Of a stretch of DNA of 64,000 bases, positions 1 to 61,368 are shown in pieces. The translations under genes and the position numbers were made by a program. The notes under the pieces were generated by a model, which saw only the letters and a program-made list of their open reading frames with translations, was not told where the DNA came from and searched no databases. Source of the stretch: Macrostomum lignano (lineage: Eukaryota); NCBI GenBank assembly GCA_002269645.1, contig NIVC01001398.1, positions 1 to 64,000 on the forward strand, written 5' to 3'. Positions within the stretch are counted from its first letter, which is position 1; each line of letters opens with the position of its first letter.

Positions 1-983
1 TGATTTCGGCCCGAATTGATGCCTAAAAAACCAGCGAGTTCACCTGCCGGACGTGGAGAAAGACGTTCAGAAACGCAGGGGGGAGCTCAGCTTAAGGGAA
101 ACTCGGGCAGATAGCAGTTAGGTTGTTACTGTTGAAGTCTATATTGTAGCTGAGGCAGCGGGGTCTTCCATCTCCCTCAACGGTACGGTGGGCTTCTCTT
201 CAACGAACCGAGTCACAGTACTCAAACATCGGTGGTACGCAATGCTATCTTCAATGACTTCAGTCGGCCGTGATTCTCTTTATGTCGAGGTCGTCTCCAG
301 TCTCAATTCCTTTCAGTCGGGTGAAGCTCATACCGGCGTTCGCTTGTGCTGCCAAAATTGAAGTACCTTGCTATGACCGTAGATAGAGTCCTGTGCACGG
401 TTGCCAGTAGTGATTAATTCGCTAAATTAGGACTTTTGAGCAACCCTAACTCACTGCCACTGACCTGGGTGCAATCCGTGATAGGGTTGCTTGGATACTG
501 ATTGGTAAGCAAACAAGCGCGAACTTTATGAATGGGCCAGCAACCTTCCTAAAGTTCCGAGTGCTGTATCCGAGAGCCCAAATGCTGTCATTCAATGGAC
601 AATAATTAGCAATTACTTCCTGTTTCCATATTCTACCCAGCAAGCGGAGTGGATTTGAGGACAAGGGCAGCAGAGGGAAGCCAGAATTAATCACTTAGCC
701 AAGTTTTGGCCAGAAGTGACTCTAAATTCACTCACATGAAACAATTTTTCCTAGTATCCACTCACCAATGCGACACAAACCTGCCTGTCGCCTAACAATT
801 TGGCTTGCGATAAAAGCGTCCCTTCTGAGAGCCTCTGACCACCGGAATCACAACTCAATTTGCTTTCGCCCAGCTTACTCTATAAATCTACACGGGAAAC
901 GCCGAAGCTCAGAAGCAAAGCTGTGGAGACCCTGCAAGCAAAAGTTAATCTTCAGCCGCACCTCCTACTTTCACAGCGTTACC

Positions 984-2738
984 ATGACTACTGATGCAAA
1001 GAGCTCGAGTTCGACCAGCGGAGCGCTGGTGACGCAGGTCCTGCTGGAAGCGGCCAGCGAGACCACAGCCCACGGGCTCAGCAAGCTGGCGGGCCAGAGG
1101 CCGCTCTACATCAAGCTCTGCTGGCTGCTGGCCTTCCTGGCCCTGCTGGGGGTGTTCACGTACAGCATGCACGGATTCACCACCAAGCTGCTCAAAGGCG
1201 AAGTCAGCACATCTTACGAAGCTGAGGCTGTGGACTTTGAGTTTCCTGACGTGTACTTCTGCAACAACGTCCAGATATCTGGCACCTACTCTGTCACGCT
1301 TCCCGGTGCAGTTGTCGCCGACATCAACAGCCGGATGAGCGCCACTTTTGCCGCCTTCGATTTCGCGACGCAGCGGCTGCTCAACTCGTCGCTCTCGAGC
1401 GCCACCGCGTCTCAAATCGATCACATGAAGCTGTTCAGGCTGAAGTCCGCCATCCAGTCGATGCCTTACAATCTGCTCGTGGACAATCTCGCTCACAAGG
1501 AGCAGCAGACGGTGCTGAAGAACGAAAGCAAGTCGGGCATCTCCCTCAAGCCCTTCTACCATCCGAACCACCTGAAGTGTCTCAAAGTCGAAATGACCAA
1601 ACAGAGACGCGCTCAGCTGAGCAAGGTCAATTCGGAGATCAGCTTCCAATTCATCCTCGATCCGTACTTCACCGAATTCAATTATACGCTTAACTATTCT
1701 GCTTATGACCAGGTGCAGAGCGTAACTGTGCCATTGTACAACAACCTAACCGCATACGTGTATGATTGGGACCTTGATACTCCATATGAGATCGACAGAC
1801 CTATGGGAATGAGGCTGTACCTGGCACCGAGGGGAGAATATCCGAGCAGGTTTGTAACAAACTTTCTGCTTGCTCCAGGCAGATCTTACAGCATTGGACT
1901 CACCATGCAGAACATCAAGAAGGATCCGAAAGCATACGATGGACAGTGCCTGACCGAGGCTCCCGAGGTGCAGTTTGTCAATCCGTACAATGCCTCGGCG
2001 TACAATTTCAGCTACAGCAACAGCTTCTGCTACTTCTCAGAGTTTGCCCGGCAGCTGTCTCAGAACGGTTGCAGTCCATATGTGAACCCGCTGCCATGGG
2101 AGTACAGAAATGTGAGATTATGCCTGAACACGAGCGGCCTAAATGAGTCAGAGATCCAGTCGAATCTCATGCATGCCTTCACGGCTGACACGGCTACGCT
2201 GAAAGACTTCCAGCGGCTGTGCCAGAACAGGCAGCTGTGCCTGACCCGGACGTACGAGACCAGCATTTCGAGCGCAAATTGGCCAAATGAGAATGGACAG
2301 GTTCGCCTAATTATGAACACCATGAGGACCGTCTTTGATGTTTCTCCCACTGTCTCCAGACCTGCGTGGGTGGCTTTTTATTTGATTTTAGAATACCATG
2401 TTAAGTCTGGGAACATTCCATTTGCGGAAAGTATGGCATCGAAGGTCTTCTCGCGCTCAGGCCTGAAGGTGACGCTGCGTAGCGAGGAGTCGAGGAGCTC
2501 GCAGATCATTCTGTCGCCCGGCTATTCTCTGCAGACTTACATTGCCGATATGGGCGGCACTGCTGGCATCTACCTCGGCTGCAGCCTGCTTAGCCTGTGC
2601 GAGCTCATCGAGCTGCTTTACAACCTGATTGTCAGAACTCGGAGCCAGAGGAAGTCCAGCAATGTTGTCCATGTGAGGGCCGCGTCCCCGGCTGTCAGCA
2701 CTGTGACTTCGGACAGCCTCAAACTGGCCAAGAAGTAG
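984..2738 (+). CDS. Intronless DEG/ENaC/ASIC-family sodium channel subunit (~584 aa)
   Basis: Pre-TM1 HG motif (TTAHGLSKL), TM1, FPDVYFCNN (FPAVTxCN-like), Cys-containing thumb, SANWP, and TM2 YIADMGGTAGIYLGCSLLSLCE with GxS filter. ATG 984 (accATG) is preferred over ORF start 768 because homology begins there and a pyrimidine tract + CAG (961-976) lies just upstream. Confidence 0.93.
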   Translation: MTTDAKSSSSTSGALVTQVLLEAASETTAHGLSKLAGQRPLYIKLCWLLAFLALLGVFTYSMHGFTTKLLKGEVSTSYEAEAVDFEFPDVYFCNNVQISGTYSVTLPGAVVADINSRMSATFAAFDFATQRLLNSSLSSATASQIDHMKLFRLKSAIQSMPYNLLVDNLAHKEQQTVLKNESKSGISLKPFYHPNHLKCLKVEMTKQRRAQLSKVNSEISFQFILDPYFTEFNYTLNYSAYDQVQSVTVPLYNNLTAYVYDWDLDTPYEIDRPMGMRLYLAPRGEYPSRFVTNFLLAPGRSYSIGLTMQNIKKDPKAYDGQCLTEAPEVQFVNPYNASAYNFSYSNSFCYFSEFARQLSQNGCSPYVNPLPWEYRNVRLCLNTSGLNESEIQSNLMHAFTADTATLKDFQRLCQNRQLCLTRTYETSISSANWPNENGQVRLIMNTMRTVFDVSPTVSRPAWVAFYLILEYHVKSGNIPFAESMASKVFSRSGLKVTLRSEESRSSQIILSPGYSLQTYIADMGGTAGIYLGCSLLSLCELIELLYNLIVRTRSQRKSSNVVHVRAASPAVSTVTSDSLKLAKK

Positions 2739-14988: not shown

Positions 14989-20422
<5,434 letters not shown>

Positions 20423-21304
20423 GGCGGCCGACCCGGACGCGCTGCGGTGGAGACCAGACACGCCTACCCAGTAGCAGAAATCTTTATTAGATGCTTGTTG
20501 CCGCTAAATAACTCGTAATTTCCCTAACGATATCACTATGCTGCTTTATGGCCTCGCTACTCTTTGTCACTGTAATCTCTCTGAAAATTTTAGTCGATTT
20601 ACCTGTAGAAGGATGTGTTTCGGGGAAGGGTTTTTACCATAGACAATCTTGGTCGAGAACGAAATGAAAATTCGTTAAAGAAACATTTAAAAAAAAAAAA
20701 ATTATTTGGTTTTGTTAAAGCGAATCAACTCTGGGATCAACAGAGGTTTTTTCTTCCATATTCGTACTGGCTAGAAATCTTCCATACAATATTTTTTTTT
20801 CCATCGGTTTGAAAACTTCTCTGCTTTCACAGGTCACCAACTGGCTGCTATTAAAGAAATGTTAAATTGCATCACGCGACTCACTCACTGTGTGTGCTTT
20901 GTTTTCCAAGAACCCTGTTATCGAACTTCCGTTTAGAGCAAGTTTAGGCTGTCTTACCTAGACTGCGTATTGGACCGCTTTTCCAGTGTACAATCTGATT
21001 ATAATCTTTTTTTACTTCCATTTTTACTGTCTGCAGCTGGTTTTGCCTGCGCGGCCCCAGTTTACTACAAGACGACGAAATTTTTAGAATCCTTATCTGT
21101 ACTCTTTTCTTAATGTTTTCCTATAGTCTCCACTAGAAGCAGCCGCAAGTACGGGTTGCCTTGCTATTCTGTGTCTCTAAACAAATCTCAAGTGAAAAAT
21201 GAGGCGATCAAAGCGACGAGAGCTTTTTCGTTTTCCTTTTAAATTCCTGCTGGTTTGTCTAACTTTTCTTGTACTTTAACCGCAGATTTTCTGCCGCCCC
21301 TCTT

Positions 21305-21925: not shown

Positions 21926-22260
21926 ATGCGGAGACGATAGGGAACAAACAAAAAAGGGGAAAATAAGAAGGAAGCCCTGAAGCGGCGCTCCCAAAGTATA
22001 GAAAAAAAGATTGGATCGATTTGCACTTCAAATACCAAATACAAAATGGCAGTCAACTTGCGTATTGGGAAGAAAGATTTGTTTTACAAGCCGATTCCAC
22101 CTTCGAGGAATCGGGGCGGTGCGAACAAGTATTTGCTTAGCTGAACTGAGTTCTCGGTCCCATGGCAACTGCCGAGCAAACAGGAATTCCTACTATCTGC
22201 AAGCTGGCTTTTGAAATTTGTTTCTTAATAATTCTCCCGTCTAAGGAGGGATTTGGCGAA

Positions 22261-23084
<824 letters not shown>

Positions 23085-23085
23085 A

Positions 23086-23477
23086 GACTGGGGAACTGGG
23101 GAACTGGGGAACTGGGGAACTGGGGAACTGGGGAACTGGGGAACTGGGGAACTGGGGAACTGGGGAACTGGGAACTGGGGAACTGGGGAACTGGGGAACT
23201 GGGGAACTGGGGAACTGGGGAACTGGGGAACTGGGGAACTGGGGAACTGGGGAACTGGGGAACTGGGGAACTGGGGAACTGGGGAACTGGGGAACTGGGG
23301 AACTGGGGAACTGGGGAACTGGGGAACTGGGGAACTGGGGAACTGGGGAACTGGAGAACTGGGGAACTGGGAACTGGGGAACTGGGGAACTGGGGAACTG
23401 GGGAACTGGGGAACTGGGGAACTGGAGAACTGGGGAACTGGGGAACTGGGGAACTAGGGAGCTGGAGAGCTGGGGAA
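23086..23477. repeat. (GGGGAACT)n 8-bp repeat
   Basis: Direct reading; abuts the GATA array. Confidence 0.98.
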
Positions 23478-23914
23478 CTATATCTTCCCCATTGCATTTC
23501 TCTTATCTTCCCTTTTGTCCGCATCCGAGCCATGGAAACGCTCTAAAGAAGACATCTACTCGAACTAAGAAGCTTTCGGGCCACCGCGCGCCGAACTTGA
23601 GAAGATATGGAGAGTCGGGGGAGCAGCCGCTGAAGTGGGAGATGAGCCCGCCCCGCCTGTGACAGCCGTGCACAGTGCGGTACAGGGCAGGCGGGAAGAT
23701 AAGAGGGAGAAAACATTTCGCAAGAATCCTTTTTGGTCTCCGCTACCCAAGTAGCAGCAGCTGCTTGCATGCAATTCTGCGCTGACATGAATTATTGATG
23801 CGCATCTACTTAGCTCGCCGCGCGATCAGCAGAATGTGCTCGGGAGGCATTCTGCTTCTCACCTCATTCTCTATCTTCGCGACTTTGCTGTTCTCCTCTC
23901 ACTCAATGTGTCTC

Positions 23915-26835: not shown

Positions 26836-42291
<15,456 letters not shown>

Positions 42292-43884: not shown

Positions 43885-44515
43885 AGACTCTGATTCACTC
43901 GGAAATGACATCCTGATTCATTCGGAGTTGACATCACGATTCACTCGGAGTTGACATCCTGATTCATTCGGAGTTGACATCCTGATTCATTCGGAGTTGA
44001 CATCCTGATTCACTCGGAATTGACATCCTGATTCACTCGGAATTGACATCCTGATTCATTCGGAGTTGACATCCATCCTGATTCACTTGGAGTTGACATC
44101 CCTCCTGATTCACTCGGAATTGACATCCTGATTCATTCGGAGTTGACATCCATCCTGATTCACTTGGAGTTGACATCCCTCCTGATTCACTCGGAAATGA
44201 CATCCATCCTGATTCACTTGGAGTTGACATCCATCCTGATTCATTCGGAATTGACATTCATCCTGATTCATTTGGAGTTGACATCCTGATTCACTCGGAG
44301 TTGACATCCTGATTCATTCGGAATTGACATCCTGATTCACTCGGAGTTGACATCCTGATTCATTCGGAATTGACATCCTGATTCATTCGGAATTGACATC
44401 CTGATTCGCTCGTAGTTGACATCCTGATTCACTCGGAATTGACATCCTGATTCACTCGGAATTGACATCCTGATTCACTCGGAATTGACATCCTGATTCA
44501 TTCGGAATTGACATC
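43885..44515. repeat. 23/27-bp minisatellite (TGACATCCTGATTCAYTCGGART)n
   Basis: Direct reading. Confidence 0.96.
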
Positions 44516-44967
44516 CATCATCCATCGATTTGTCCAAAGTCTTACACATCCTGCAGCTTGCCCATCTGTTCCGCGAAAGAGGGAGCACGGGAGGAGGCTG
44601 AGAACAAGTGCACTGGCAGCTTAGGCCTACAAAACGCATCAGTTTGCCTTTGCTGCAGAGCTTCGAATTTGCTGTCCAAATTACCAGTAATTGCCTATTT
44701 GCATAAGCTTTTAATTGCTGGCGTTCTGGGCGACCACTTCTGCCAGCTTGTGCACACAGAGCCAGTTACGATTGAGCTTGAGCTCCCGTCACTCATGCAA
44801 ACTGGGAACGTATACTCGTACGCAGCCGTTATAGAGAACTTAGAAAAGGTTTATATTTCTACTGATAGTAGATGAAAAGAACATTGCAAGGAAAATTCGC
44901 AACGGTCTTCGAGAAATTTCGCCATTTGCAGCCTTTTAAATAGAAGGATTCGCTGCCGACTCCAGTT

Positions 44968-45096
44968 GGCAGGCTAAGCCAAGCGGTTACTTCGTTAGTG
45001 ATCTATTCGGTAATGATGTTCTGCTTTTAACGGAAACAAGTTGGTTCGATCCCAACCTAACGCCCAAATCAAACTGCTAGCGCAATCCTGCCTTTT
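44968..45096 (+). ncRNA. vtRNA: Vault-RNA-like Pol III gene, copy 1 (129 nt), with embedded tRNA-like domain 44992-45064 (anticodon TTT, Lys)
   Basis: 5' GGCAGGCTAAGCCAAGCGGTTACTTCG matches the recalled vault RNA signature (human vtRNA1-1 GGCTGGCTTTAGCTCAGCGGTTACTTCG). 3' GCTAGCGCAATCCTGCC-TTTT. Terminal helix GGCAGG/CCTGCC, inner helix AGCGGTT/AACTGCT, B box GGTTCGATCC, TTTAAA at about -30. Confidence 0.78.
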
Positions 45097-45419
45097 ACAC
45101 TTTTGACTATTTCTCTTCAGGTTTCTGTTAATCCTAAAAAACTTTTCTGTTTCTTATTGAAGATCCTGAAGAGTTGAACAACTCATCTCAGCACAAAAAA
45201 CTTTATTTGCTGTCTACTTTGGTCCTTGGGGAAAACTGCCACCTAGTTAGCTTATTTAAAAGGCGTTAGCTTATTCTCTTCTCTTCAGTAGCTAAGTCTC
45301 AGTAGCTAAAGTAGAACATCATTACAGTAATAAAATAACCTGCATTAAATGGTGAACCAGCCACTATAAATGGTGAGCCAGCCACTATAAATGGTGAGCG
45401 GCTACAGCACCAGAAGCTG

Positions 45420-45548
45420 GGCAGGCTCAGCCAAGCGGCTACTTCGTTAGTTATCTAATTGGAAAGATGTTCTGCTGTCACCAGAAAGGTTGTTGGTTCG
45501 AGTCCAACCTAACGCTCATTCTTGCTGCTGGCGCCATCCTGCCATTTT
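45420..45548 (+). ncRNA. vtRNA: Vault-RNA-like Pol III gene, copy 2 (129 nt), with embedded tRNA-like domain 45444-45516 (anticodon GTC, Asp)
   Basis: 5' GGCAGGCTCAGCCAAGCGGCTACTTCG; 3' GCTGGCGCCATCCTGCC-ATTTT; inner helix AGCGGC/GCTGCT (compensatory relative to copy 1); B box GGTTCGAGTCC; TATAAA at 45386-45391. Confidence 0.78.
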
Positions 45549-46342
45549 CTTCTTGCGTCCAAGCCAAATTTGCCGATATGTATCGAAAGATAATGTAGGC
45601 TCCATGTTCTACTTCCTTCATAAACTCTGGATAAGAGTCAATTTTGCCGATATGTATCGAAAATAAATAAAATAATTTTCGAATTTTCGTCAAGGCTAAA
45701 TTTGCCTATATGTATCGAAAAATATAGTAAGTCCAGGACAAAGCCTCTTGCATGCTGGATTTTCGGGTTAGGCAATGTAAAGTATAGTAGCTTTAAAGAG
45801 AATTTCTAAATACAAGTATATTGTTCGCATGGCAAATTGTTGTTTACTAAAACTAAACAGAAAAGCAAATACTAAGCTGTACAAGTGTGCAAATTTAATA
45901 ATTCAAAACAATTAAACAACTGGCAAGCAAAATTCGAATGCAGCAGCAAGATTATGGACCCAATTTGGGAATAAATATCGAATGGAGGAATCTCGCAGGA
46001 GACCCTATAAAACACAGATGAGAATGGAAGAATTCAACAAATAGACTGGCAGATTGTTCTCAGCAAGTTTTCAATTTTCTATACCGTTTTTAAGGTAGTA
46101 ACTTTACACGGAAATTTTTATAAACACTATCTATAACAATTAGCATATAGAAAGCTACTCTCAGTAGTAGGAATGGAACACGTATTTACAGGAATAGTTT
46201 ATCGCCAACAAAAAAAACTTTTTAAGCGAGCAAACCGTGTGTTCGGCAACGGTTTTGAGAGGGGACAACTAGAAAATAAAAGCATTGACAAGTCGGACTC
46301 GAGACACACACAAACAGGGGGTCACTAGGCTGCTACCAAGCC

Positions 46343-47058
46343 TCAGCTGCTCTGCCCATTGAATCCCACCCTCAGTGATAGGTTGCCAATTATGCCAGCG
46401 TTCACTGTCACGTGGGCTGGCGGAGGCTGCGGCTGCAGCGGCTGCTGCTGCTGATGATAATGATGAGGCTGGTGCGGAGGCTGCGGAAGCTCTGGACTGT
46501 TCAATTCGACCACAGTTTCAGTCGGGCCGCTGCCGCCGCCGCCGCCCCGAGCGCTATGACAGCTCTCCCAGCTGGAGCAGAGCGACGCGGCGTCCCCCTG
46601 CGTTGCTATGGGAACCAAATCGGCGGCCTGAACGTACTCGTTGTCTAAGCAGAGACGTTCGTTGCGCTGCTCCGCCGGCGCCTCCGGCTGCTGCCGCCGC
46701 TGCTGCCGCCGCTGCTGCATCAGAGGGTCGGCCGCCTTGGAGTTTGCCACCAGAGTCTCCGACGGCTGGCGCGGCGCCTTGGAGGCCACGATGCCCTTCA
46801 GCAGGAAGTTCCTCGTGGTCGTTGACGAGGTGCGCGGCTTCGAAGCCGACGAGGATGTCGACGAAGTCGACGTGGACGAAATCGGCTGCCGGGGCTCCGG
46901 CTTGCCGCGCCGGCACCGCGCCGCATCGGCGATGCAGCCGACGCCGATGGCAACGCCGACAACAAAAGCCAGCAAACTAGCGCCGGCCAGGGCGCCGAAG
47001 AAGGCACCGGTGCCGATGCTGGCATCGGACAGTGGGGCGCCGTCCGACTGCTGGCTGA

Positions 47059-59758: not shown

Positions 59759-60266
59759 GGAGAGAGAGAGGCAGCATTTCGGCCCGTGGCGCAACTCGCC
59801 ATTGCACTACGCGAGATTCCGATGCAATTACTGGGAAATTTCGCATTCGGGTCTCCTCATTTTGTAGTGCAAACAAAGGCTTAGTTTGTAGCAAAATCGC
59901 ATCTGCGAATATTGCCGTAAATGCTGGTCGACTGCTTTAGCCCCGAAATCCGGACTTCTTCTGCTGCCTTCAGTTCTGATTCTGAATATGGCATTGAAAT
60001 TTGCTGCAAGACATTTGCAGCGGCTTCAGCTTTAGTTGCGCATTATGCCCGATGACAGATTTAATCAGTGTCAGTTGCGTAACTCTATTGCGCACATGCA
60101 ATCTCTTTATTAGCGGCTGGCCTGTTGACTGCGATGCGTGGAAAGATTGACAACATGCACTGGGGTGGGCTGAAGGGCGTGAGAATGGCGAAGTTGAGTT
60201 AGGAAGACATGGCACTGAGCAATGAGAAAGAGTCTTAAATGGCCTAGAACACAGACACAGACAGAA

Positions 60267-60339
<73 letters not shown>

Positions 60340-60340
60340 T

Positions 60341-60397
<57 letters not shown>

Positions 60398-60509
60398 AAG
60401 ACAGAAAGACAGACAGGCAGACAGACAGACAGACAGACAGACATACAGACAGACAGGCAGACAGACAGACAGACATACAGACAGACAGACAGACAGACAG
60501 ACGACAGAA

Positions 60510-60580
<71 letters not shown>

Positions 60581-60659
60581 AAGACAGAAAGACAGACAGG
60601 CAGACAGACAGACATACAGACAGACATACAGACAGACAGGCAGACAGACAGACAGACAT

Positions 60660-60698
<39 letters not shown>

Positions 60699-60729
60699 CA
60701 TATACAGACAGACAGAAAGACAGACAGGC

Positions 60730-60766
<37 letters not shown>

Positions 60767-61368
60767 GGCAGCCCACCTGGACCAGTCCGGACCGCTCGGT
60801 ATTGACAGTTTCCACATAGTTGCTGGTCTCGGCCGCTGGCTCGGTGTACACGGCGTACATCCTGTCTCTGACCTCGTGCATAACGTGGGCGCGGGCGCCG
60901 CGCGCCATCCACAGAGCGCGGCTGCGGCGCGAGTACAGATCGGCTGTGGTGAAGCCGATGTCGGCAAACTCGGGCCCGGTCAGCTCCACCAGGTCGGTGG
61001 CCTCGCGAATCGGCGGCAAGGCGGCGAAGAAGACCCACGAATTGCCGCGGCTCAATCGAAGCGACACCGGCGGCGGCTGCGACTTCTTTGACGGCGCTGG
61101 CGGCAGGAGGAGCGCGCTGATCTGCCGGTTCACCGGAGCAGCCGCGGAGTGTCGCCAGACTCTGCCGGCGCTGGCGCTGCCTCGGTCGAACCGGCGGCAG
61201 ACCCGGCTGTCACCGTCGCCGACAATCGCGCAGACGAAGGCGGCGCCGCTGCCGGAGTGGCCGGGGAAGAAGAGGCTGCGCACCAGGCCGCCGCTGCCAC
61301 CGGTTGGCCAGGCCGCCACCTTGGCGAAGTCCGAGATGTTGCTCGTCCGAAGCTCGTACACAGCGTCC
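46343..61368 (-). CDS. Divergent transmembrane semaphorin (Sema + PSI + TM + cytoplasmic tail), 5'-incomplete; exons 61368-60777, 58052-57908, 53981-53535, 50522-50160, 47196-46343
   Basis: [19 protein letters not shown]...[11 protein letters not shown]...YDVLE, FIGLF...AVCRF, LLVGWDTGEV, PSI domain [10 protein letters not shown]...GRC, and [28 protein letters not shown]. All four internal introns are GT-AG with compatible phases (0,1,1,1). Upstream exon(s) not found. Confidence 0.88.
47330..47775. repeat. 31-bp minisatellite (GAGATTAGACTGTCACTCTCTCAGATCCCCA)n
   Basis: Direct reading. Confidence 0.96.
48360..48815. repeat. CT-rich minisatellite, ~30-bp units grading to 26-bp (CATCTCCAGTGCTCTC core)
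   Basis: Direct reading. Confidence 0.9.
49817..50136 (+). repeat. Degenerate telomere-like hexamer array (TTAGGG/CTAGGG/CTAGAG)
   Basis: Direct reading; interstitial, in a semaphorin intron. Confidence 0.9.
50605..51915. repeat. 18-bp minisatellite (GTTCACTGTCTCTCTCTA)n
   Basis: Direct reading. Confidence 0.98.
52880..53530. repeat. 15-bp minisatellite (CCCCATTCACCCCAG / CTCCATTCACCATGG)n
   Basis: Direct reading; abuts the donor at 53534. Confidence 0.97.
54050..55095. repeat. 20/21-bp minisatellite (GTGTCATTTTGAGTTCGGTGA[G])n
   Basis: Direct reading. Confidence 0.97.
55957..56325. repeat. 23-bp minisatellite (GCTCTCTGTTACCCTCTCTGCCG)n
   Basis: Direct reading. Confidence 0.95.
57162..57730. 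repeat. 45-bp minisatellite containing the reverse complement of the 23-bp unit core
   Basis: CAGAGAGGGTAACAGAGAGC is the reverse complement of GCTCTCTGTTACCCTCTCTG. Confidence 0.95.
58460..58825. repeat. 22-bp minisatellite (GCAGAGGGCGGAAGGGTTGCAA) with alternating variants
   Basis: Direct reading. Confidence 0.95.
59671..59770. repeat. (GA)n microsatellite
   Basis: Direct reading. Confidence 0.97.
60255..60770. repeat. (GACA)n microsatellite
   Basis: Direct reading; abuts the donor at 60776. Confidence 0.98.

Follow-up and report, generated by a model that had tools for sequence, protein, structure and literature searches.

Two adjacent candidate vault RNA genes with a tRNA-shaped core in Macrostomum lignano

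Can a vault RNA enclose a tRNA-like fold as its body? The question is raised by two 129-nucleotide (nt) units on the plus strand of a 64-kb stretch of the genome of the flatworm Macrostomum lignano (GenBank assembly GCA_002269645.1, contig NIVC01001398.1, positions 1 to 64,000; hereafter the window, to which all coordinates refer). Each unit matches the Rfam Vault family from one end to the other and also contains a tRNA-like cloverleaf that scores as a member of the Rfam tRNA family. The units are best read as two paralogous vault RNA (vtRNA) genes of RNA polymerase III (Pol III) type with a tRNA-shaped core, which apparently arose by an old tandem duplication of the DNA and have both been kept by selection; a probability of about 0.7 is assigned to this reading. 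Family membership, the cloverleaf and the pattern of substitution in the stems can be read from the two copies directly, whereas transcription, protein partners and a role as a tRNA mimic are proposed below as probable consequences.

Vault family membership and Pol III signals

The original prediction, which was made from the sequence letters, had taken the two units for a tandem pair of expressed vault RNA genes, and had proposed a covariance-model search with Rfam RF00006 and a count of the copies as checks. A cmsearch of the whole window with RF00006 (Vault; gathering score 34) is positive for both units over the full model:

44968-45096, plus strand: copy 1 of the vault RNA gene, 129 nt with its T4 run; RF00006 47.2 bits (E = 2.1e-7) over all 99 model positions; 151.9 bits with R1, a custom covariance model derived from both copies
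45420-45548, plus strand: copy 2 of the vault RNA gene, 129 nt with its T4 run; RF00006 55.2 bits (E = 1.2e-9) over all 99 model positions; the minimum free energy (MFE) fold is the panhandle plus the full cloverleaf

Both scores lie above the gathering score, and a chance match was rejected on the E values of the whole-window search (2e-7 and 1e-9). The match to RF00006 is carried by sequence that lies outside the tRNA-like core, i.e. by GGCAGGCU.AGCCAAGCGG.UACUUCG on the 5' side and by CUGCU.GCGC.AUCCUGCC-UUUU on the 3' side. The features that mark members of the Vault family are found in both units: box A followed by UUACUUCG and then by box B, a panhandle formed by the two ends, a TATA-like box upstream, a T run downstream, and a length of 129 nt that falls within the 80-150 nt range. 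The trait that is absent is the variable central domain without a defined conserved fold, the place of which is taken here by a conserved cloverleaf. The cloverleaf departs from the usual anatomy of the family and breaks no feature that defines it. The individual signals are as follows:

44935-44940, plus strand: TATA-like box TTTAAA of copy 1, 33 nt 5' of GGCAGG (sequence reading)
45386-45391, plus strand: TATA-like box TATAAA of copy 2, 34 nt 5' of GGCAGG; third and last copy in a 21-nt tandem repeat
44977-44994, plus strand: box A AGCCAAGCGG and vault-specific motif TTACTTCG of copy 1; box A doubles as the 5' strand of the inner panhandle helix P2
45429-45446, plus strand: box A AGCCAAGCGG and CTACTTCG of copy 2 (pattern search and RF00006 alignment)
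45043-45053, plus strand: box B GGTTCGATCCC of copy 1, which is the T-loop and T-stem of the tRNA-like core
45495-45505, plus strand: box B GGTTCGAGTCC of copy 2, likewise the T-loop and T-stem of the tRNA-like core
45074-45092, plus strand: 3' strands of the panhandle helices P2 (CTGCTAGC) and P1 (CCTGCC) of copy 1; 87% identity to the copy 2 segment, the linker just 5' of it having diverged
45525-45543, plus strand: 3' strands of the panhandle helices P2 (CTGCTGGC) and P1 (CCTGCC) of copy 2 (folding and alignment of the copies)
45093-45096, plus strand: T4 Pol III terminator of copy 1 (sequence reading)
45545-45548, plus strand: T4 Pol III terminator of copy 2 (sequence reading)

The units begin with GGCAGGC at 44968 and at 45420, which gives a start-to-start spacing of 452 bp, and in both of them a closing helix GGCAGG/CCTGCC is followed by TTTT. 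The TATA-like box is preceded by CAGCC at a distance of 1 nt (copy 1) or 2 nt (copy 2), and its spacing from the unit is kept in both copies although the remaining upstream flanks are unalignable. The box of copy 2 is triplicated at 21-bp steps by a tandem repeat of 2.6 copies (TAAATGGTGAGCCAGCCACTA, 45346-45399); only the last box of the triplet falls at -34. The string AGCCAAGCGG(T/C)TACTTCG has two matches in the window, both of them within the units, even when three mismatches are allowed (0.14 expected), and box A together with TTACTTCG is the search signature used for vault RNAs in PMC8824774. Box B has a form common to both RNAs, GGUUCGA(UC/GU)CC, and the whole set of Pol III signals is spaced alike in the two copies. 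The coordinates and lengths of the units, the TATA-like boxes with their CAGCC, the (T/C)TACTTCG that follows box A, box B, the closing helix and the T4 run all agree with the original prediction, the distance of the TATA-like boxes being measured here at 33 and 34 nt; together with the full-model matches these Pol III signals support the vault RNA identity of both units.

The copy count gave two copies within the 64 kb, and these are adjacent. No third copy was found in the window by an Rfam scan relaxed to E<=1, nor by R1 run without filters, in which the next-best match reached 12.7 bits as compared with ~152 for the units. Vault RNAs are documented from deuterostomes and also from Lottia, Helobdella, M. 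lignano itself (Rfam hits) and Fasciola hepatica (PMC2770079, PMC8824774, PMC9179338); the premise of the original prediction that they are poorly annotated outside deuterostomes thus holds to a lesser extent than had been assumed. Because Rfam already lists hits in M. lignano, vault RNA genes in Macrostomum are not new in kind, and the present pair adds at most a new member. Other flatworms, S. mansoni and F. hepatica, encode the vault protein MVP (PMC2770079, PMC8824774).

A tRNA-like cloverleaf within the panhandle

The central 73 nt of each unit, which box A precedes and the outer stem's 3' strand follows, form a complete tRNA-like cloverleaf. The two cores exceed the gathering score (29) of the Rfam tRNA family, RF00005, and both are called as tRNAs by ARAGORN, with different isotypes:

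44992-45064, plus strand: tRNA-like cloverleaf core of copy 1, anticodon loop CUUUUAA; RF00005 42.6 bits, E = 1.1e-5; ARAGORN tRNA-Lys(UUU)
45444-45516, plus strand: tRNA-like cloverleaf core of copy 2, anticodon loop CUGUCAC; RF00005 49.0 bits, E = 1.9e-7; ARAGORN tRNA-Asp(GUC)

The acceptor stem of the core (UCGUUAG/CUAACGC) has on direct reading 6 bp and a U1·C72 mismatch. The D arm pairs AUCU with AGAU in copy 2 and contains one U·U mismatch in copy 1; the anticodon stem has 5 bp and a 7-nt loop in which C32, U33 and A37 are kept; the variable loop has 4-5 nt; and the T arm is perfect (GUUGG-UUCGA(UC/GU)-CCAAC). The core of copy 2 also has, again by direct reading, the nucleotides of the tRNA tertiary contacts U8-A14, A15-U48, G18/G19 with U55/C56, G26-A44, U54-A58 and G53-C61, in addition to U33 and a purine at position 37. 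Such contacts, e.g. U8-A14 and those of G18G19 with U55C56, build the L-shape of tRNA.

Cloverleaf and vault elements are interleaved, the T arm of the core being the vault box B and the 5' acceptor strand starting within the vault motif UUACUUCG. The original prediction had noted box B correctly in the central region and had missed the complete cloverleaf of which box B is the T arm. In the RF00006 alignment both copies carry, relative to the Vault consensus, an insertion of ~20 nt right after box B, which provides the 3' strands of the T stem and of the acceptor stem; because this insertion is absent from the consensus, typical Vault members are expected to lack a cloverleaf. ARAGORN found no tRNA in five published F. 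hepatica vtRNAs (Table S9, PMC8824774), nor in three human vtRNAs. The core part of R1 (positions 26-107) matched a genuine bacterial tRNA-Leu(GAG) in a metagenome-assembled genome (MAG) of Kofleriaceae (L008, 4926-5015, minus strand, E = 4.5e-4), an independent sign of the likeness of the core to tRNA. In the literature that was covered, which did not extend to key papers on vault RNA evolution, no account of a tRNA-shaped central domain in a vault RNA was found, the matches being papers on viral tRNAs or on unrelated subjects; a tRNA-mimic core of a vault RNA thus appears to be undescribed.

The cores are nevertheless not real tRNAs. The supposed Lys and Asp cores have the same acceptor, D and T stems, and U1·C72 in both; both have A10 and not G10, with a degenerate D-arm box A; and the first T run stands 28 nt 3' of the end of the core, beyond the panhandle strand, there being no terminator of the core's own. 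It is on account of this common body, of the mismatch at 1:72, of the degenerate box A and of the missing terminator that a decoding function is denied to them. Of the attributes of a tRNA, the cores have the cloverleaf, the tertiary contacts and the score; they lack a body that is consistent with the anticodon, a paired 1:72 position, and a box A and terminator of their own. The anticodon triplet itself differs between the copies (UUU versus GUC).

Selection on the stems and competing explanations

The two units are identical at 105 of 129 positions (81%), with an alignment score of 75 as against -17 ± 6 for shuffles, while the flanks of the copies (upstream -150 to -41, downstream +1 to +110) align no better than shuffles. 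Since the units have stayed alike while their flanks diverged, the duplication is apparently old and both copies are conserved. The differences that have accumulated avoid the stems: over the panhandle and cloverleaf the copies differ in 5 of 72 paired columns and in 23 of 60 unpaired columns (Fisher p = 1.2e-5), when box A, box B and the vault motif are left out in 4/56 and 21/47 (p = 1.5e-5), and in the core alone in 2/35 and 11/24 (p = 7.6e-4). Of the five paired columns with a difference, a U-A/C-G double change accounts for two and U-G/U-A for one, and in the remaining two copy 2 has a pair where copy 1 has a mismatch. The alignment bears out the predicted pair of the inner helix at columns 21/108, T-A in copy 1 as against C-G in copy 2. 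Helix P1, of 6 bp, is invariant, and P2, of 9-10 bp, has one U-A/C-G compensatory change; the 3' strands of the two helices differ in 2 of 15 columns and the adjacent 3' linker in 5 of 9. The outer panhandle stem and the cloverleaf both look, from these counts, to be under selection. The MFE structure of copy 2 is the panhandle with the complete cloverleaf (-39.6 kcal/mol), and in the RNAalifold consensus of the two copies P1 and P2 are retained together with the stems of the acceptor, anticodon and T arms. An alternative hairpin in the MFE fold of copy 1 is not conserved in copy 2 and was dropped.

A number of points weigh against a pair of functional vault RNA genes with a selected tRNA-shaped core. 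Copy 1 has one mismatch in its D stem (U·U) and another in P2 (C·A), and its cloverleaf (-27.0 kcal/mol) lies 9 kcal/mol above its MFE fold; because of the energy difference and the two mismatches, copy 1 may be the weaker gene and perhaps a decaying one. The folding z-scores are modest, -2.25 and -1.55. Only two sequences can be compared, and as these are paralogues there is a single true double-sided compensatory change. Some of the conservation of paired columns could come from promoter constraint at the level of the DNA, and the tRNA-like module could be removed from the mature RNA by RNase P and RNase Z.

If the preferred reading is right, the units would be transcribed by Pol III with the help of a TATA-like box near -33 and of the internal boxes A (+10 to +19) and B (+76 to +86), and termination at the T4 run would produce an RNA of ~126-129 nt. 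Purifying selection and the signals in the sequence point to such expression. The 5' and 3' ends of the RNA would pair as the vault panhandle, made up of P1 (GGCAGG/CCUGCC), an internal loop and P2, and in place of the variable central domain would stand the 73-nt tRNA-shaped module, which comprises all four arms (acceptor, D, anticodon and T). The intact RNA would work as a vault RNA, the panhandle and the 3' U-tail being probably bound by vault and La-type proteins, and the L-shaped core may serve as a tRNA mimic for tRNA-binding or tRNA-modifying proteins.

Of the rivals, a precursor model has to be taken most seriously: RNase P and RNase Z would release a 73-nt tRNA-like RNA from the 129-nt transcript, the leader and trailer would be left as a short duplex or degraded, and the vault-like panhandle would regulate the processing and not be the functional body. 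The cloverleaf does have the acceptor/T-arm stack that is recognised by both enzymes, and the predicted folds put single-stranded linkers of 5 nt (5') and 9-10 nt (3') between the core and P2, where cleavage sites would be accessible; the 3' linker, moreover, evolves freely, as seen in its five differing columns out of nine. However, only 2/15 columns differ, the compensatory pair included, in the 3' strands of P1 and P2, which play no part in the promoter, and this fits a functional panhandle; the unit as a whole matches the vault family end to end; and U1·C72 makes a poor context for RNase P. Processing of this kind is judged unlikely, and an intact vault RNA is the more likely product.

A second rival is bound up with the possible origin of the core. 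Among 20 human isotypes, which stood in for the flatworm's own tRNAs, tRNA-Asn(GUU) gives the best alignment to both cores (scores 13 and 17 versus <=7 for the others). A count by eye across the anticodon arm, variable loop and T arm puts the identity of copy 2 to tRNA-Asn at 34 of 41 positions, and the most parsimonious ancestor of the loops CUUUUAA and CUGUCAC is CUGUUAA, the Asn loop. For the Asn, Asp, His and Pro tRNA sequences that were used, the 5' halves agree with PMC7549673 (mammalian tRNA-Asn included), and an exact-sequence search for the 3' half of tRNA-Asn gave no match. The similarity to tRNA-Asn(GUU) extends over the D-loop, the anticodon stem, the variable loop AGGUU and the T arm, whereas the acceptor and D stems of the core are unrelated to it and U1·C72 and the anticodons UUU and GUC set the core apart. 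The comparison suggests, as a lead and not as a result, that before the tandem duplication a tRNA-Asn gene was captured, or took part in a recombination, at the common box B and so gave rise to the core. The same best alignment would also suit vault RNA genes in which the cloverleaf is a by-product without function, e.g. a fragment of tRNA-Asn captured at box B that has not yet decayed, and so would the failure to conserve the anticodon triplet between the copies. Such a capture is, however, older than a duplication whose flanks have lost all similarity, the stem columns of the core outside the promoter elements still differ in only 2/35 as against 11/24 in the loops, and the nucleotides of the tertiary contacts are intact; a functionless cloverleaf is on this evidence improbable.

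Still less credit is given to tRNA-derived short interspersed nuclear elements (SINEs) or retropseudogenes without a function of their own, the scenario that the original prediction had named as its own possible undoing. The tRNA-like core does hold an internal Pol III promoter, and tRNA-derived SINEs exist in flatworm genomes (PMC2770079). Against this, the two copies in the 64 kb are adjacent and in the same orientation, and around neither unit were target-site duplications, flanking direct repeats, or an A-rich tail or one like that of a long interspersed nuclear element found; each copy keeps its own TATA-like box at an equal distance upstream, unlike retroposed copies, which disfavours retroposition; and the pattern of substitution is that of purifying selection on stems. 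Least probable of all, and rejected like the SINEs on the evidence against them, are genuine tRNA-Lys(UUU) and tRNA-Asp(GUC) genes with long leaders and trailers that match the Vault family only by way of box A and box B, for they could claim the RF00005 scores and the ARAGORN isotype calls but are contradicted by acceptor, D and T stems and a U1·C72 common to both "isotypes", by A10 in place of G10 and the degenerate D-arm box A, by a T run 28 nt past the core, by a Vault match that rests on the outer sequences (GGCAGGCU.AGCCAAGCGG.UACUUCG and CUGCU.GCGC.AUCCUGCC), and by the lack of resemblance of either core to human tRNA-Lys or tRNA-Asp.

Vault RNA genes with a tRNA-shaped core therefore remain the preferred reading, and from it a bolder proposal can be framed: that in macrostomids the vault RNA contains a functional tRNA mimic of L shape, with tRNA-Asn as its probable source, through which vault RNA is linked to tRNA biology. 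This proposal is tentative, with the odds somewhat against it. The coupling might follow either of two routes, the mimic acting as a substrate or decoy for tRNA-binding enzymes, or as a precursor from which RNase P and RNase Z would produce a small RNA that resembles tRNA. The anticodon loop of copy 2 has U33-G34-U35 and C38, the context that is used by queuine-insertion and Dnmt2 enzymes, and human vault RNA is a substrate of NSUN2. If true, the proposal would give the clearest sequence-level hint of module exchange or common ancestry between vault RNAs and tRNAs, and a parallel to the tRNA-mimicking bacterial Y RNA YrlA. The function of vault RNA is still debated, and its central domain is usually taken as a variable spacer; a conserved tRNA-mimic domain would provide a testable handle on partners, namely tRNA-modifying and tRNA-processing enzymes, and the pair would be a data point on the trading of parts between Pol III type-2 genes and tRNA genes. 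Standard pipelines will annotate such loci twice (as tRNA-Lys or tRNA-Asp and as Vault), inflating the tRNA gene counts of flatworms.

Genomic setting and comparison with known systems

The vtRNA pair sits in a non-coding gap of ~4 kb, which runs from the 3' end of an INPP1-like gene on the plus strand to an open reading frame (ORF) at 46343-46975 that belongs to an uncharacterised gene on the minus strand. The exons of the inositol polyphosphate 1-phosphatase-like gene are found at 39305-39640 and 41800-42291 (plus strand). The latter exon is 80% identical to the M. lignano inositol-1,4-bisphosphate 1-phosphatase (UniRef), its next-best matches being at <=40% over most of the query and none at >58%; the flatworm origin that had been inferred for the DNA is borne out by this nearest relative. 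Directly 3' of the copy 2 terminator, at 45553-45729, are three repeats of ~45 nt with a near-palindromic core (GCCGATATGTATCGAAA) and spacings of 74 and 58 bp, which may represent either a site for protein binding or what is left of a mobile element. About 450 bp 5' of vtRNA copy 1 lies a minisatellite with 26 copies of a 23-nt unit (43890-44516; 85% matching, consensus CTGATTCACTCGGAATTGACATC).

Farther away, an intronless ORF of 656 aa at 768-2738 (plus strand) contains a full-length ASC/DEG-ENaC domain (PF00858, E = 7e-35); a word-indexed protein search returned no homologue of it at E<=1e-10, so that it would encode a very divergent channel. Exons of SAXO1/2, an axonemal microtubule stabiliser, lie at 15899-16285 and 17055-17471 (plus strand; PF05217, E = 2e-11 and 1e-19). 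The window is dense in tetranucleotide microsatellites, (CAGA)n, (TAGA)n and their relatives (e.g. 19425-20461, 22225-23533, 28126-28974, 29824-30453 and 60110-61040), and in longer minisatellites, and these give rise to many long spurious ORFs on both strands. A sub-threshold match to H19_3 at 23376-23492 lies in simple repeat and was set aside as noise.

Public collections were scanned for similar arrangements with a pattern that joins box B to UUACUUCG and box A, TCGAACC N{25,55} CGAAGTANCCGCTNNGCT. The scan returned six metagenome loci, two bacterial MAG loci and no viral loci, which is about the number estimated for chance. Rfam recognised a vault RNA in none of the six metagenome loci, R1 matched no pattern site when run over all eight loci, and the only structured RNAs matched in these loci are ordinary bacterial tRNAs.

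The closest known relatives are the vault RNAs themselves, i.e. vertebrate vtRNA1-1 to 1-3 and 2-1 and those of Lottia, Helobdella, M. lignano and F. hepatica, with which the units have in common the TATA-like box, box A followed by UUACUUCG, box B and the T run (PMC9179338, PMC8824774). They also agree with these RNAs in a length of 80-150 nt, a panhandle made by pairing of the ends, arrangement in small gene clusters, and the match over the full model. The difference is in the central domain, which here is a complete tRNA cloverleaf and not a variable hairpin; the short central helix of the family, in which UUCG pairs with the CGAG of box B, is replaced by the acceptor and T stems.

A non-decoding cloverleaf within a longer non-coding transcript is also seen in mascRNA, in the MEN-beta elements and in the tRNA-miRNA-encoded RNAs (TMERs) of gammaherpesviruses. 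TMERs are Pol III transcripts in which the tRNA-like part serves as promoter, and mascRNA comes from MALAT1. These cloverleaves are excised by RNase P and RNase Z, and no helix between the ends of the transcript itself encloses them; the present core lies inside a conserved panhandle.

The nearest analogue in design is YrlA, a bacterial Y RNA associated with Ro60, in which a stem of the 5' and 3' ends is the handle for the protein and a module at the opposite end, with D, T and acceptor-like arms, imitates tRNA (PMC4201824). The likeness is one of analogy and not of homology: YrlA belongs to an unrelated bacterial family, its partner is Ro60 and not the vault, and it is without a normal anticodon arm, whereas the core described here has all four arms. 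The Macrostomum pair would accordingly stand as a second independent case, after YrlA, of an RNA of a large ribonucleoprotein that joins a terminal protein-binding stem to a tRNA-like module.

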